A stretch of 64,000 nucleotides of DNA from Saccostrea echinata. Lineage: Eukaryota. Shown here one piece after another: positions 37,592 to 47,077 of the stretch. The stretch is taken from the NCBI RefSeq assembly GCF_033153115.1, contig NW_026889778.1, positions 33,852,001-33,916,000 on the forward strand, read 5' to 3'. Below the pieces are notes generated by a model. The model was not told the origin of the DNA. It ran no database searches and saw nothing but the letters and a program-made list of their open reading frames with translations. A program made the position numbers and the translations under genes. Position 1 is the stretch's first letter. Every line of letters begins with the position of its first letter.

Positions 37592-38552
37592 ATGCCTAAG
37601 TACATATATGCTGAAATATACTTAGTAGTTTTCCTGTGTCTCCATTTTGGTAAGTTTTATTCAACTGTTGTTACATGTATACGAATGTTTTTTTTTTTTG
37701 TTTTTGTCGATTCATTCATAAGACATAACACGAGTTGATCTTTTTAATTCAGTGCAGAACGGCCAGGCACACAAACCAACTAAGGAGGCCGTTTTCGTGA
37801 CGGCTCTGTACGACATTGGTCGGGAAAACTGGACACACTTTAAACGAAGTTTCGATGAATACTTATCTTATTTCAGGAATGTCCTGCGTTTGAATGTAAA
37901 AATGATAATATATTCCGACGAATCAGTTCAAAAAGTTGTGTTGGATGAAAGAAAAAATCTACATCACAAAACACAGTCATACTCGCTACCATTTACTGAT
38001 TTAGAATACTACCGATTCAGACAGCATATAGAACATGTCCTTGTTTCACCAGAATTCCGAGATTCCAACGAAATGCTAAATTATCCAGAAGCGTTTTCCT
38101 CAAAATATTTAATCTTGATGAACAACAAAGTTTCTTTTTTGTCAGATGCTGTAAGAAAAAATCCTTTTAACAGTACACATTTCTTTTGGATTGATGCCGG
38201 GTATGGACACGGGGATGATCTTACCAAATGGAAGAACTTTCAGCCTAGAGTTCTTTTAAGTAAACGCAACAAGATCACCTATATTGTATTGAACGATCCA
38301 GCGTTATATAAAGATATCAAAGACCTTCATAAAGTCCAAATAGTCCCTGCTTTTAATGGAGAGTTCTTTGGGGGTGATGCTGGGGCCATTTTGAAATATG
38401 AAAAACTCTACAAGAAAACTTTTCGAAAACTCCTCACGGAAAACATAGTGGATGATGATCAAAACGTGGCGTTTCATTGTTATAAAGAAAATCCCAATCT
38501 GTTTGAAAATGTTTGCGGATGCTGGTCTGATGCCTTTAAATTGTTTTCATAG
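37592..38552 (+). CDS. HtrL/YibB-family glycosyltransferase-like protein, paralogue 1 (285 aa, 2 coding exons: 37592-37649, 37753-38552)
   Basis: Exon 1 ATG..TTT G|gtaagt encodes the hydrophobic leader MPKYIYAEIYLVVFLCLHF. A phase-1 intron ends at ttcag| and joins the 266-aa ORF in frame (the GTG start in the ORF track is the acceptor G). Motifs recognised as HtrL-like: VTALYDIGR, RSFDEYL, NPFNSTHFFWIDAGYGH, GEFFGG, DDDQ. Confidence 0.85.
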
Positions 38553-39943
38553 AAGATGAGAGAGAGGAGCAACCTCGCTGTACATAAAGTTTGAAATCAA
38601 GTGATAGTAGTATCACGGAACAGTATATTTTTATCACATGATGTATCACATCACGTGATGACTTTTTATGTTTTGTATTTGATTTTTATACATGCATTTT
38701 GCTTTGTCTGTTTGTTTGTTTGTGTGTATGTGTGTGTGTTTTTTTTTTTTATATTATTACAATTTTTAAAAGGGTATTTCTTGCATGGTGAATATAACTA
38801 TGGAGAGGGAATTGGGCTGTTTCGCTTTGCGTTACTAGTACAGTGTACTTATTACAAAGATTGATATTTGATGAGGTGATTTCGACTTTATCATCTACCG
38901 AAATTCATGTTGATAAGCAATAAGATGACTGATATTAGTTTGAAAGTATCTCCTACTCTAATTACTATCGTGTGCACTATTTTTTATAGTCAAATTGAAA
39001 GCGTTAAACCTCTTTGAATGAGAGTTATCTTTCCTTTTTCATATTGCCAAAACATGCTTGAATCTTGCATTCTTTTTCTGATTCTGAATCTTACATGCCT
39101 CGTTCCCCCAGTATTATACACATCTTTTTAATGAGGAGTTTGTATATTATTGCAGCTATATATTGATATTTACATCCACTGAATATTATTTTCTTTATTT
39201 CATATGAAAACCATTGTCGTTTATCAGACAGTAAACACCCCTAAGCAAGCTTCTTGAGCAACGGCTCTTCCATCAATTATGCATACAATGATATACACAT
39301 CTAAAATACAATATTTAATTTTATTTTAATTGTTTTTCTACAGGTATAAACATAAACAATAAAATGCCTTTCTTTGTTTGTTAGTACAGGAATTAACGTC
39401 GCAGCTATTGCGGAAAAAAACATAACCTGCTTAAGCGGGTTATGTTTTTTTTTTCTGCAACAGCTGCGACATGCATTTATTCCCATACTAACAACCAAAG
39501 AAAGCATTTTATTGTTCAAATGAATAAACCCAGGGAAAATTGTTCTAAATAAGATACAGAAGTCGAGGTCCACAAAGGAATAAAAAGAATTCTTTGAGTC
39601 TCAAAATGGGCGGGGCAGGGGGGATGCATGGGTGGATACGGGTGAGGAAGGAAAGTGGCGCAATTATAAATAAGATGATGTAAGGGAATACTAATGATGT
39701 CGAAAATCTTCATAACTGAAAGTGAGGTAGGAATCTTCATTAACATTTTTAGCTATTTTCCTTAATATTTACACGGTTATTGACGAACAGATCTGAGGGG
39801 TGATCCCCTTCTAATTTGACATTGTAGATAAAAGGGTTTATTCATTTTTAGCAAATCGGAGCCGAAGGCTCACCTAAGCTTTTCTGATCAAAATTTGTCC
39901 TTTGTCTGTCATTGTTGTTCGTCGTAAACTTTTTACAATTTCT

Positions 39944-39990
<47 letters not shown>

Positions 39991-45500: not shown

Positions 45501-46114
45501 GTATTTTCAGATTCATCTGTCAAAATTTTAAAGAGTTGTGTCATTTCAAAAAGATTTTATTGTATATAGCGTCATCGACATAATTAAGAGGAGTGAAACT
45601 GAGAACTTTAGAAATGATAATAGATACCAAGGTCATTCGGACAAGGTCAAGGTCACAGGGTAGAAAAACATTAAATTATTAACAATGCTACAAAGTGAAG
45701 AAACAGTAGAAGAGTATACATGACACACTTGAGACAAAGGTTTCTTGCGACTCGAGAGTTTCTCGTGACCCTAACCGAGGCCGAAGTTCAAGATCATTTG
45801 TTTTAGAAGATCGTTTTAATTCACTTACCTGCTGTTTACGTATTAGAATTTTGAATATTATAACGTTTTTTATCAAATATAATATGTCAAATTTTAATTT
45901 CAAATCAAAACGTAAAAATATTACATAATTATATATTGATTATTGTAGAATTCAACAAAGTTCAAAACTCGGAGTAAATGATCACCAGTCCCTCCACAGT
46001 GTTAATTCTATATAGTCCAGTTATGACCTCTTTGAGATAAGCTTAGAGTACACACCAAGTTATCGTCCAGCATTAGTATAAACAAAATATACAGTACATG
46101 CCTAGAATACTAGA

Positions 46115-47077
46115 ATGCCTAAGTACATATATGCTAAAATATCCTTAGTATTTTTCCTGTGTCTTCTCAATGGTAAGTTTATTCAACTGTTGTTACATGT
46201 TTACGAATGCTTTTATTTGTTTTTCTTGATTTATTCATAAGACATAACACAAGGTGATCATTTGTTTTATAATCCAGTGCAGAACGGCCAGGCACACCAA
46301 CCAAATCAGGAGGCCGTTTTCGTGACGGCTCTGTACGACATTGGTCGGGAAAACTGGACACACTTCCAACGAAGTTTCGATGAATACTTATCTTATTTCA
46401 GGAATGTCCTGCGTTTGAATGTAAAAATGATAATATATTCCAACGAATCAGTTCAAAAAGTTGTGTTGGATGAAAGAAAAATTCTAGATCACAAAACACA
46501 GACATATATGCTAAAATTTACTGATTTAGAGTTTTATCGATACAGACAGCATATTGGACACGTCCTTGTCTCTCCAGAATTTCGAAATTCCAACGAAATG
46601 CTTAATCACCCAGAAGCATTTTCAGTCAAATATTTAATCTTGATGAACAACAAAGTTTCTTTTTTGTCAGATGCTGTAAGAAAAAATCCTTTTAACAGTA
46701 CACATTTCTTTTGGATTGATGCCGGGTATGGACACGGGGATGATCTTACCAAATGGAAGAACTTTCAGCCTAGAATTCTTTTAAGTAAACGCAACAAGAT
46801 CACCTATATTGAATTGAACGATCCAGCGTTATATAAAGATATCAATGATCTTCATAAAGTCCAAATGGCACCTGCTTTTTGTGGAGGATTCTTTGGGGGT
46901 GATGCTGGGGCCATTTTGAAGTATGAAAAACTCTACAAGAAAACTTTTCGAAAACTCCTCACGGAAAACATAGTGGATGATGATCAGAACGTGGCGTTTC
47001 AGTGTTACGTAGAAAATCCCAGTCTTTTTGAAAATATTCGTGGACACTGGTTTGATGCCTTTAAATTGTTTTCGTAA
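46115..47077 (+). CDS. HtrL/YibB-family glycosyltransferase-like protein, paralogue 2 (285 aa, exons 46115-46172, 46278-47077)
   Basis: Same exon sizes as paralogue 1 (58+800 nt), gtaagt donor and ccag acceptor. Leader MPKYIYAKISLVFFLCLLN. 30 of 266 exon-2 residues differ from paralogue 1 by manual count. Has canonical GGFFGG and DDDQ. Confidence 0.87.

Follow-up and report, generated by a model that had tools for sequence, protein, structure and literature searches.

Tandem HtrL_YibB paralogues of the oyster Saccostrea echinata, predicted GT-A enzymes, differ at loop positions in register with the donor-determining residues of the ABO transferases

Introduction

The locus described here raises the question of whether two neighbouring paralogues can differ in their choice of sugar donor in the way that the human A and B blood-group transferases do. 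It lies in a window of 64,000 nucleotides (nt) from the oyster Saccostrea echinata (G000:C29:33852001-33916000; the window is this whole stretch, and positions are counted from its first letter), and it comprises two genes of the HtrL_YibB family on the + strand, paralogue 1 (37592-38552) and paralogue 2 (46115-47077), each with two exons and each encoding 285 amino acids. Within one short loop paralogue 1 reads PAF-N-G-E-FFGG and paralogue 2 reads PAF-C-G-G-FFGG. The original prediction, made from the letters of the DNA, likened the two differing residues (202 and 204) to those that separate the human enzymes GTA and GTB, and proposed that the copies had diverged in donor specificity or that paralogue 1 was a null. 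In the human pair GTA carries Leu266 and Gly268, GTB carries Met266 and Ala268, and these two positions are key donor determinants (PMC4692239). Our answer, which we offer tentatively and rate at slightly short of an even chance, is that the paralogues are GT-A-fold nucleotide-sugar transferases and that the copies with Glu204, rather than being dead, are active with a donor other than that of the ancestral copy or with a narrower range of donors.

Results and Discussion

Two complete HtrL_YibB genes that differ in one loop

Both open frames are complete and share one exon plan: 19 codons plus one base make up exon 1, an intron of about 100 nt with GT..AG ends separates the exons, and the domain lies wholly in exon 2. 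In paralogue 1, exon 1 (37592..37649) provides the start codon, encodes a short segment resembling a signal peptide, ends in phase 1 and is followed by GTAAGT; the intron (37650-37752) has GT..AG ends, and exon 2 (37753..38552) carries the entire HtrL_YibB domain to the stop codon. The corresponding parts of paralogue 2 are exon 1 (46115..46172; start codon and signal-peptide-like segment, again followed by GTAAGT), the intron (46173-46277) and exon 2 (46278..47077; entire domain to the stop codon). Exon 1 reproduces the N-terminus of the respective NCBI model exactly, and the spliced products are 100% matches to P0002 'uncharacterized protein LOC133194253' (paralogue 1) and P0001 'protein HtrL-like' (paralogue 2).

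A hidden Markov model search assigned both proteins to Pfam HtrL_YibB (PF09612), as had been predicted, with 155.7 bits for paralogue 1 (E = 2.3e-45) and 168.8 bits for paralogue 2 (E = 2.3e-49) over profile positions 2-265/267; the gathering threshold of this family is 24.1 bits. TIGR02192 (NCBIfam 'protein YibB', for which no further function is named) also matches, below its equivalog cut-off. The family extends over about 1,900 representative clusters, from E. coli lipopolysaccharide (LPS) loci to corals and molluscs.

Of 266 compared residues, 30 differ between the two proteins (88% identity). Re-reading of the sequence confirmed both loop motifs at the reported positions. The loop strand occupies residues 199-208 (38346..38375 in paralogue 1, the derived state; 46871..46900 in paralogue 2, the ancestral state). 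Paralogue 1 has AAT for N202 (38355-38357), GGA (38358-38360), GAG for E204 (38361-38363) and then FFGG (38364-38375), and paralogue 2 has TGT for C202 (46880-46882), GGA (46883-46885), GGA for G204 (46886-46888) and FFGG (46889-46900), so that codons 202 and 204 each differ by two nucleotides. Two further motifs are relevant to what follows. The first is W-I-D-A-G (residues 146-150; 38187..38201 in paralogue 1 and 46712..46726 in paralogue 2), at the strand end that is the DxD position, and the second is D-D-D-Q (residues 234-237; 38451..38462 and 46976..46987 respectively), at the helix start that is the xED position. D-D-D-Q begins 26 residues past FFGG, as first reported. The accompanying claim that 39 residues after the two sites are identical has to be corrected: the identical run comprises residues 205-241, which is 37 residues with FFGG included and 33 after it.

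A predicted GT-A fold in register with ABO and LgtC

An AlphaFold2 model of paralogue 2, built from an 89-sequence alignment, has a mean predicted local distance difference test score (pLDDT) of 96.5 and a predicted template modelling score of 0.93. Searched with Foldseek against the PDB, it retrieved LARGE1, XXYLT1, GfsA, BoGT6a, alpha3GalT and GTA/GTB at E = 1e-6 to 1e-4, the top match (E = 1e-6) having a probability of 1.00. VIA-align comparisons of the full model gave Z scores of 13.0 for LARGE1, 12.5 for BoGT6a, 11.6 for PBCV-1 A64R, 11.4 for GTB, 11.3 for UGGT, 10.5 for XXYLT1, 10.3 for LgtC and 10.1 for glycogenin, with nucleotidyltransferases below these retaining glycosyltransferases (Z 8-9.4) and about 200 residues aligned at best. 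The ESM Atlas returned weak leads only (0.83-0.85), all of them GT-A families, GT6 and GT8 among them. As modelled, HtrL_YibB thus has the GT-A fold that the original prediction called for, nearest to the retaining glycosyltransferases of GT8, GT6, GT24 and GT34, and the paralogues would belong to a known kind, the GT-A enzymes.

The core motifs fall where this fold would have them. In the model W-I-D-A-G closes the central strand (141-147), FCGGFFGGD forms a beta-strand (201-209) that leads into a long helix (210-229), and D-D-D-Q begins the next helix (236-246); the order DxD, G-loop, xED is that of the GT-A common core. The model therefore identifies the xGxFFGG segment as the GT-A G-loop strand. 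The G-loop is a core donor-binding element of GT-A enzymes, with donor binding documented for GT6 (PMC7185993).

For the register, the model was cut after FFGG (residues 1-208, pLDDT 95.5) and the structural partner of its last residue was taken. G208 aligns to residue 272 of GTB (2y7a), to 161 of BoGT6a (4cj8), to 159 of LgtC (1g9r) and to 138 or 139 of glycogenin. The catalytic residue of BoGT6a is 192, an offset of 31 that equals 303 minus 272 in GTB. Counting back from GTB 272, C/N202 corresponds to ABO 266 and G/E204 to ABO 268, and in LgtC numbering (GT8 alignment) C202 is N153, G203 is A154 and G204 is G155. The structural mapping on which the original prediction was built is therefore supported. 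In the ABO enzymes the backbone at 267/268 hydrogen-bonds donor O3, and D302 and E303 contact O4/O6 (PMC4692239). From spacing and conservation, D236-Q237 would correspond to this acidic pair, as had been proposed, and to D188-Q189 of LgtC, lying 28-29 residues on in HtrL against 30-31 in ABO and 29-30 in LgtC.

Conservation is in line with this assignment of motifs. W146 and D148 are invariant in the family. Across about 214 family rows, position 203 is Gly in 186 and position 208 is Gly in 190. The third Asp column of D-D-D-Q is D in 160 rows and E in 47, and the next is Q in 184 and E in 21, making [DE]-[QE] nearly invariant; the oyster proteins thereby place Gln at the spacing of the GT6 catalytic Glu (E303 in GTA/GTB, E192 in BoGT6a), where about 10% of family rows have Glu. 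Taken together, a GT-A fold near the retaining enzymes, the register with ABO 266-268 and LgtC 153-155 and the [DE]-[QE] pair suggest that HtrL_YibB is a family of retaining nucleotide-sugar transferases.

A single origin of Glu204 in a constrained column

The two loop positions behave very differently in the family. Column 202 belongs to the most variable ones, with A in 52 rows, S in 47, N in 21, I in 18, T in 16, C in 15 and G in 14. At position 204 the counts are G 143, T 22, S 16, A 11 and E 6, a small residue in about 90% of rows. Four of the six Glu204 rows are S. echinata entries, and the other two are Mytilus coruscus P0023 and P0151.

The S. echinata genome holds 11 HtrL_YibB matches, four of them close tandem copies on one contig (L001-L004, in which L001 is paralogue 2 and L004 is paralogue 1) and the other seven distant paralogues elsewhere. 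The maximum-likelihood tree is (S. cucullata CGG, (L001 CGG, (L002 TGE, (L003, L004 NGE)))), with support of 97/89 for the four S. echinata copies and 100/99 for the clade of L002, L003 and L004. Because S. cucullata, with C-G-G, falls outside and the three Glu copies form one clade, the sequences place x-G-G as the ancestral state, kept by paralogue 2, and G204E as a change that arose once, at the base of L002/L003/L004 within the S. echinata lineage. The tree also makes the Gly-to-Glu change of M. coruscus P0023 independent of that in the oyster.

Pairwise omega is 0.36-0.41 for all pairs and about 0.36-0.39 between Glu-bearing copies. L002 and L004, both with Glu, are separated by 15 synonymous and 22 non-synonymous changes, and omega is below 1 at P = 0.004. 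The Glu-bearing copies are intact and under purifying selection, and a simple null is therefore unlikely.

A possible change in donor use, and its rivals

If the family is what the model suggests, the products would be lumenal or secreted, retaining-type nucleotide-sugar transferases of the secretory pathway. In that case the donor-sugar pocket would be lined by the backbone of the G-loop together with side chains 202 and 204, and Glu204, with its side chain set against the sugar's C2/C3 face, would remodel the pocket so that donor choice is restricted or redirected. The position of bacterial members in LPS/lipooligosaccharide (LOS) loci is in keeping with such a role, as are the type II anchor-like segments that a heuristic test found in 30 other family members, which have N-terminal extensions. 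The C/N/T variation at 202 is probably the ordinary variability of that column. On this analysis a change in donor use between the paralogues is plausible.

Several observations weigh against this reading, and some of them concern the assignment to glycosyltransferases. At the DxD site there is a single Asp (D148, in W-I-D-A-G), and the second position is Gly in at least 90% of rows; metal-independent GT-A families with a degenerate DxD do exist (PMC3961637, PMC7185993). In the oyster cluster copies a hydrophobic run of about 10 residues stands directly ahead of the domain, which by a heuristic test is signal-peptide-like and no type II anchor, for which we looked for a short cytoplasmic tail, a hydrophobic signal-anchor of about 18 residues or more, and a stem. 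A Pfam scan at E <= 1 returned PF09612 as the sole family, with neither PF03414 (GT6) nor PF01501 (GT8). Sequence searches of the PDB (phmmer with the protein, hmmsearch with the 89-sequence profile and phmmer with the piece from the motif to DDDQ) found no glycosyltransferase and no GT6 chain, and as a sequence match the common GGFFGG thus counts for little. An hhalign comparison with the E. coli GT8 enzymes WaaO/WaaJ gave a probability of 0.1%, in a weak test whose profile held two sequences only. The literature searched contains no HtrL_YibB member with demonstrated activity, and for the register we depended on where the final aligned residue of a shortened, predicted model fell, rather than on a complete ligand-bound superposition.

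Others concern the two sites themselves. As column 202 is freely variable, C against N there is weak evidence of a switch. The two-nucleotide changes to which the original prediction drew attention are not special to codons 202 and 204, since paralogues 1 and 2 differ at two or more bases in 11 codons (78, 80, 86, 111, 117, 198, 202, 204, 245, 255 and 257). Clustering of differences near the loop was considered and set aside, being not significant in a protein-wide scan (P = 0.52). At about 0.37, omega points to rather loose constraint, and other conserved residues have changed in the Glu clade too (Y89F, V117S, N190K and F259S, plus Y151H in L002).

These last points lead to the strongest rival, that of ordinary, largely neutral divergence between young tandem duplicates, in which the changes at 202 and 204 are simply tolerated and the resemblance to ABO 266/268 is fortuitous, having been noticed after the fact. 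The variability of column 202, the 11 multiply changed codons and the lack of significant clustering all favour it, as does the similarity of omega in every comparison (0.36-0.41), with no accelerated branch seen. With 30/266 residues differing and uniform placement, the chance that both named sites differ is about 0.012, a figure for sites that were chosen after the fact. Against neutral divergence, residue 204 is small (G, S, T or A) in some 90% of rows and Glu in 6 of about 214, and its ABO equivalent lines the donor pocket, where even Gly against Ala already matters (PMC4692239). Moreover, Glu has been retained by three copies that have since diverged under purifying selection, and it recurs independently in a mussel. 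We consider neutral divergence a somewhat unlikely explanation.

A second rival takes up the other half of the original prediction and is less probable still: the copies with Glu would have no catalytic activity, whether because they are nulls or because, as pseudoenzymes, they have been retained to bind. It would have a parallel in the inactivating substitutions at ABO 268, of which G268R (the O2 allele) is one that leaves the enzyme inactive. A bulky charged residue in place of a conserved glycine at the 268-equivalent position speaks for it, as do the other conserved residues altered in the Glu clade, among them Y151H of L002 beside the invariant Asp. However, all three Glu-bearing frames are intact, W146, D148 and the D-Q pair are all kept, and omega between these copies (0.36-0.39, P = 0.004) disfavours a null in paralogue 1, while being compatible with a pseudoenzyme under selection.

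Lastly, it is highly improbable that HtrL_YibB proteins are not glycosyltransferases and use a GT-A/nucleotidyltransferase scaffold for some other reaction, such as nucleotidyl or phospho-sugar transfer, which would void the ABO analogy: the family is uncharacterised, its DxD is incomplete and the truncated model aligns to nucleotidyltransferases and glycosyltransferases equally well (Z 7.4-7.6), but with the full model retaining glycosyltransferases lead (Z 10-13 over 8-9.4), the arrangement and spacing of G-loop and [DE]-[QE] fit GT6 and GT8, bacterial members lie in LPS/LOS glycan loci and a type II anchor layout is common among eukaryotic members.

Oyster A-like glycans

The original prediction had pointed to blood-group-A-like glycans in oysters, and the literature agrees, as oyster N-glycans carry genuine blood-group-A-type epitopes (PMC10301044, PMC10217650). 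The pathway by which the A-like norovirus ligands of oysters are synthesised is unresolved past the fucosyltransferases (PMC10217650), and a new candidate family of retaining transferases in oysters is therefore of value. A six-frame search of the S. echinata genome gave no match to PF03414 (GT6), which is a weak negative. In its ancestral form, x-G-G-FFGG, the G-loop of the bivalve HtrL-like enzymes agrees with the loop of the human A transferase. It would be a very long shot to suppose that these enzymes supply the missing retaining step, in which oyster glycans are capped with A-like epitopes, the norovirus ligands, and that the Glu paralogues of S. echinata make a different cap. If true, this would be a paralogue-encoded analogue of ABO variation. 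More broadly, the widespread HtrL_YibB family gains a concrete, testable functional hypothesis, and the oyster cluster offers a natural pair, with ancestral Gly and derived Glu at the 268-equivalent position.

Other features of the cluster and the window

Of the remaining cluster copies, L003 (G000:C29:33850701-33851465) lies some 0.5 kb upstream of the first letter of the window. Its protein is the same as that of paralogue 1, and in exon 2 the two genes differ by a single synonymous change. The DNA 3' of L003 (window positions 1 to ~9200) is paralogous to that 3' of paralogue 1 (39079 to ~44940), at 92-96% in blocks, and assembly gaps occur at homologous places in the two (1166-1318 and 40233-40374). 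The two segments may have arisen by a recent segmental duplication, or they may be haplotypes that the assembly failed to collapse. The second of these gaps (40233..40374, no strand) is intergenic, 1.7 kb past the stop of paralogue 1 and 5.7 kb ahead of the start of paralogue 2, and touches neither coding sequence. L002 (G000:C29:33813946-33814710) reads PVL-T-G-E-FFGG, has its Y151H just past the invariant W-I-D-A-G and carries 12 further private changes. The seven distant paralogues (L005-L011, on contigs C1, C54, C64, C37, C15 and C3) are single open frames of 293-341 amino acids, and in all of them the G-loop is (G/A)-G-G and the xED site is [DE]-Q. The independent Glu residues at this position occur as S-G-E-FFGG and S-G-E-FLGG (P0023, an M. 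coruscus fragment, and P0151), and the closest mussel relative has S-G-G.

Codons 121-166, which include the DxD region, show no nucleotide differences between the two paralogues (46637-46774 vs 38112-38249) despite an overall synonymous divergence (dS) of ~0.17, suggesting a gene-conversion tract or very strong constraint. A (GA)n microsatellite (47078-47118) begins immediately 3' of the paralogue 2 stop codon, and paralogue 1 has a short version only. Elsewhere in the window there are dispersed and local direct repeats of 81-95% identity (7785-8302 vs 27242-27759; 40884-41307 vs 41602-42030; 28261-28921 vs 28646-29296), which are probably fragments of transposable elements together with a tandem array. 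None of the six largest mechanical open reading frames between 47500 and 64000 had a Pfam match, in a test that did not extend to short exons.

Comparison with known systems

Three known systems frame these proteins. With GT6 (GTA/GTB, bovine alpha3GalT and BoGT6a) they share a GT-A fold (Z 11.4-12.5), an x-G-x-FFGG G-loop strand in the same structural register and an acidic/polar pair about 30 residues on; the Asp at the DxD position precedes the loop by about as much in both, 54 residues in the oyster proteins and 53 in GTA (GTA numbering). Unlike GT6, to which no sequence homology is detectable, HtrL has its DxD reduced to D-A-G, its pair is D-Q in most members rather than D-E, and the oyster proteins begin with a short signal peptide instead of a type II anchor.

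The best structural neighbours belong to GT8, a group with LgtC, glycogenin, the xylosyltransferase domain of LARGE1 (Z 13.0), XXYLT1 and E. coli WaaO/WaaJ. The LgtC strand F-N153-A154-G155 aligns with F-C202-G203-G204 of HtrL, and D188-Q189 of LgtC, after the following helix, matches D236-Q237 in both spacing and chemistry. The differences are that hhalign, with its two-sequence profile, gave no profile similarity, that HtrL is without the second Asp of DxD and that the C-terminal H-x-x-G-x-x-K-P-W signature of the GT8 alignment is not evident in it.

The third system is the namesake of PF09612, E. coli HtrL (YibB), which belongs to the same Pfam and NCBIfam families. Unlike the oyster proteins it is cytoplasmic and without a signal peptide, and oyster HtrL is about 30% identical to bacterial members and falls in an animal clade with multiple paralogues. 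The core motifs are nevertheless the same in kind, W-I-D-F-G, a G-G G-loop and V-D-D-D-Q. Bacterial members of the family are located in LPS/LOS glycan loci, and E. coli HtrL itself adjoins the waa cluster of LPS-core glycosyltransferases.

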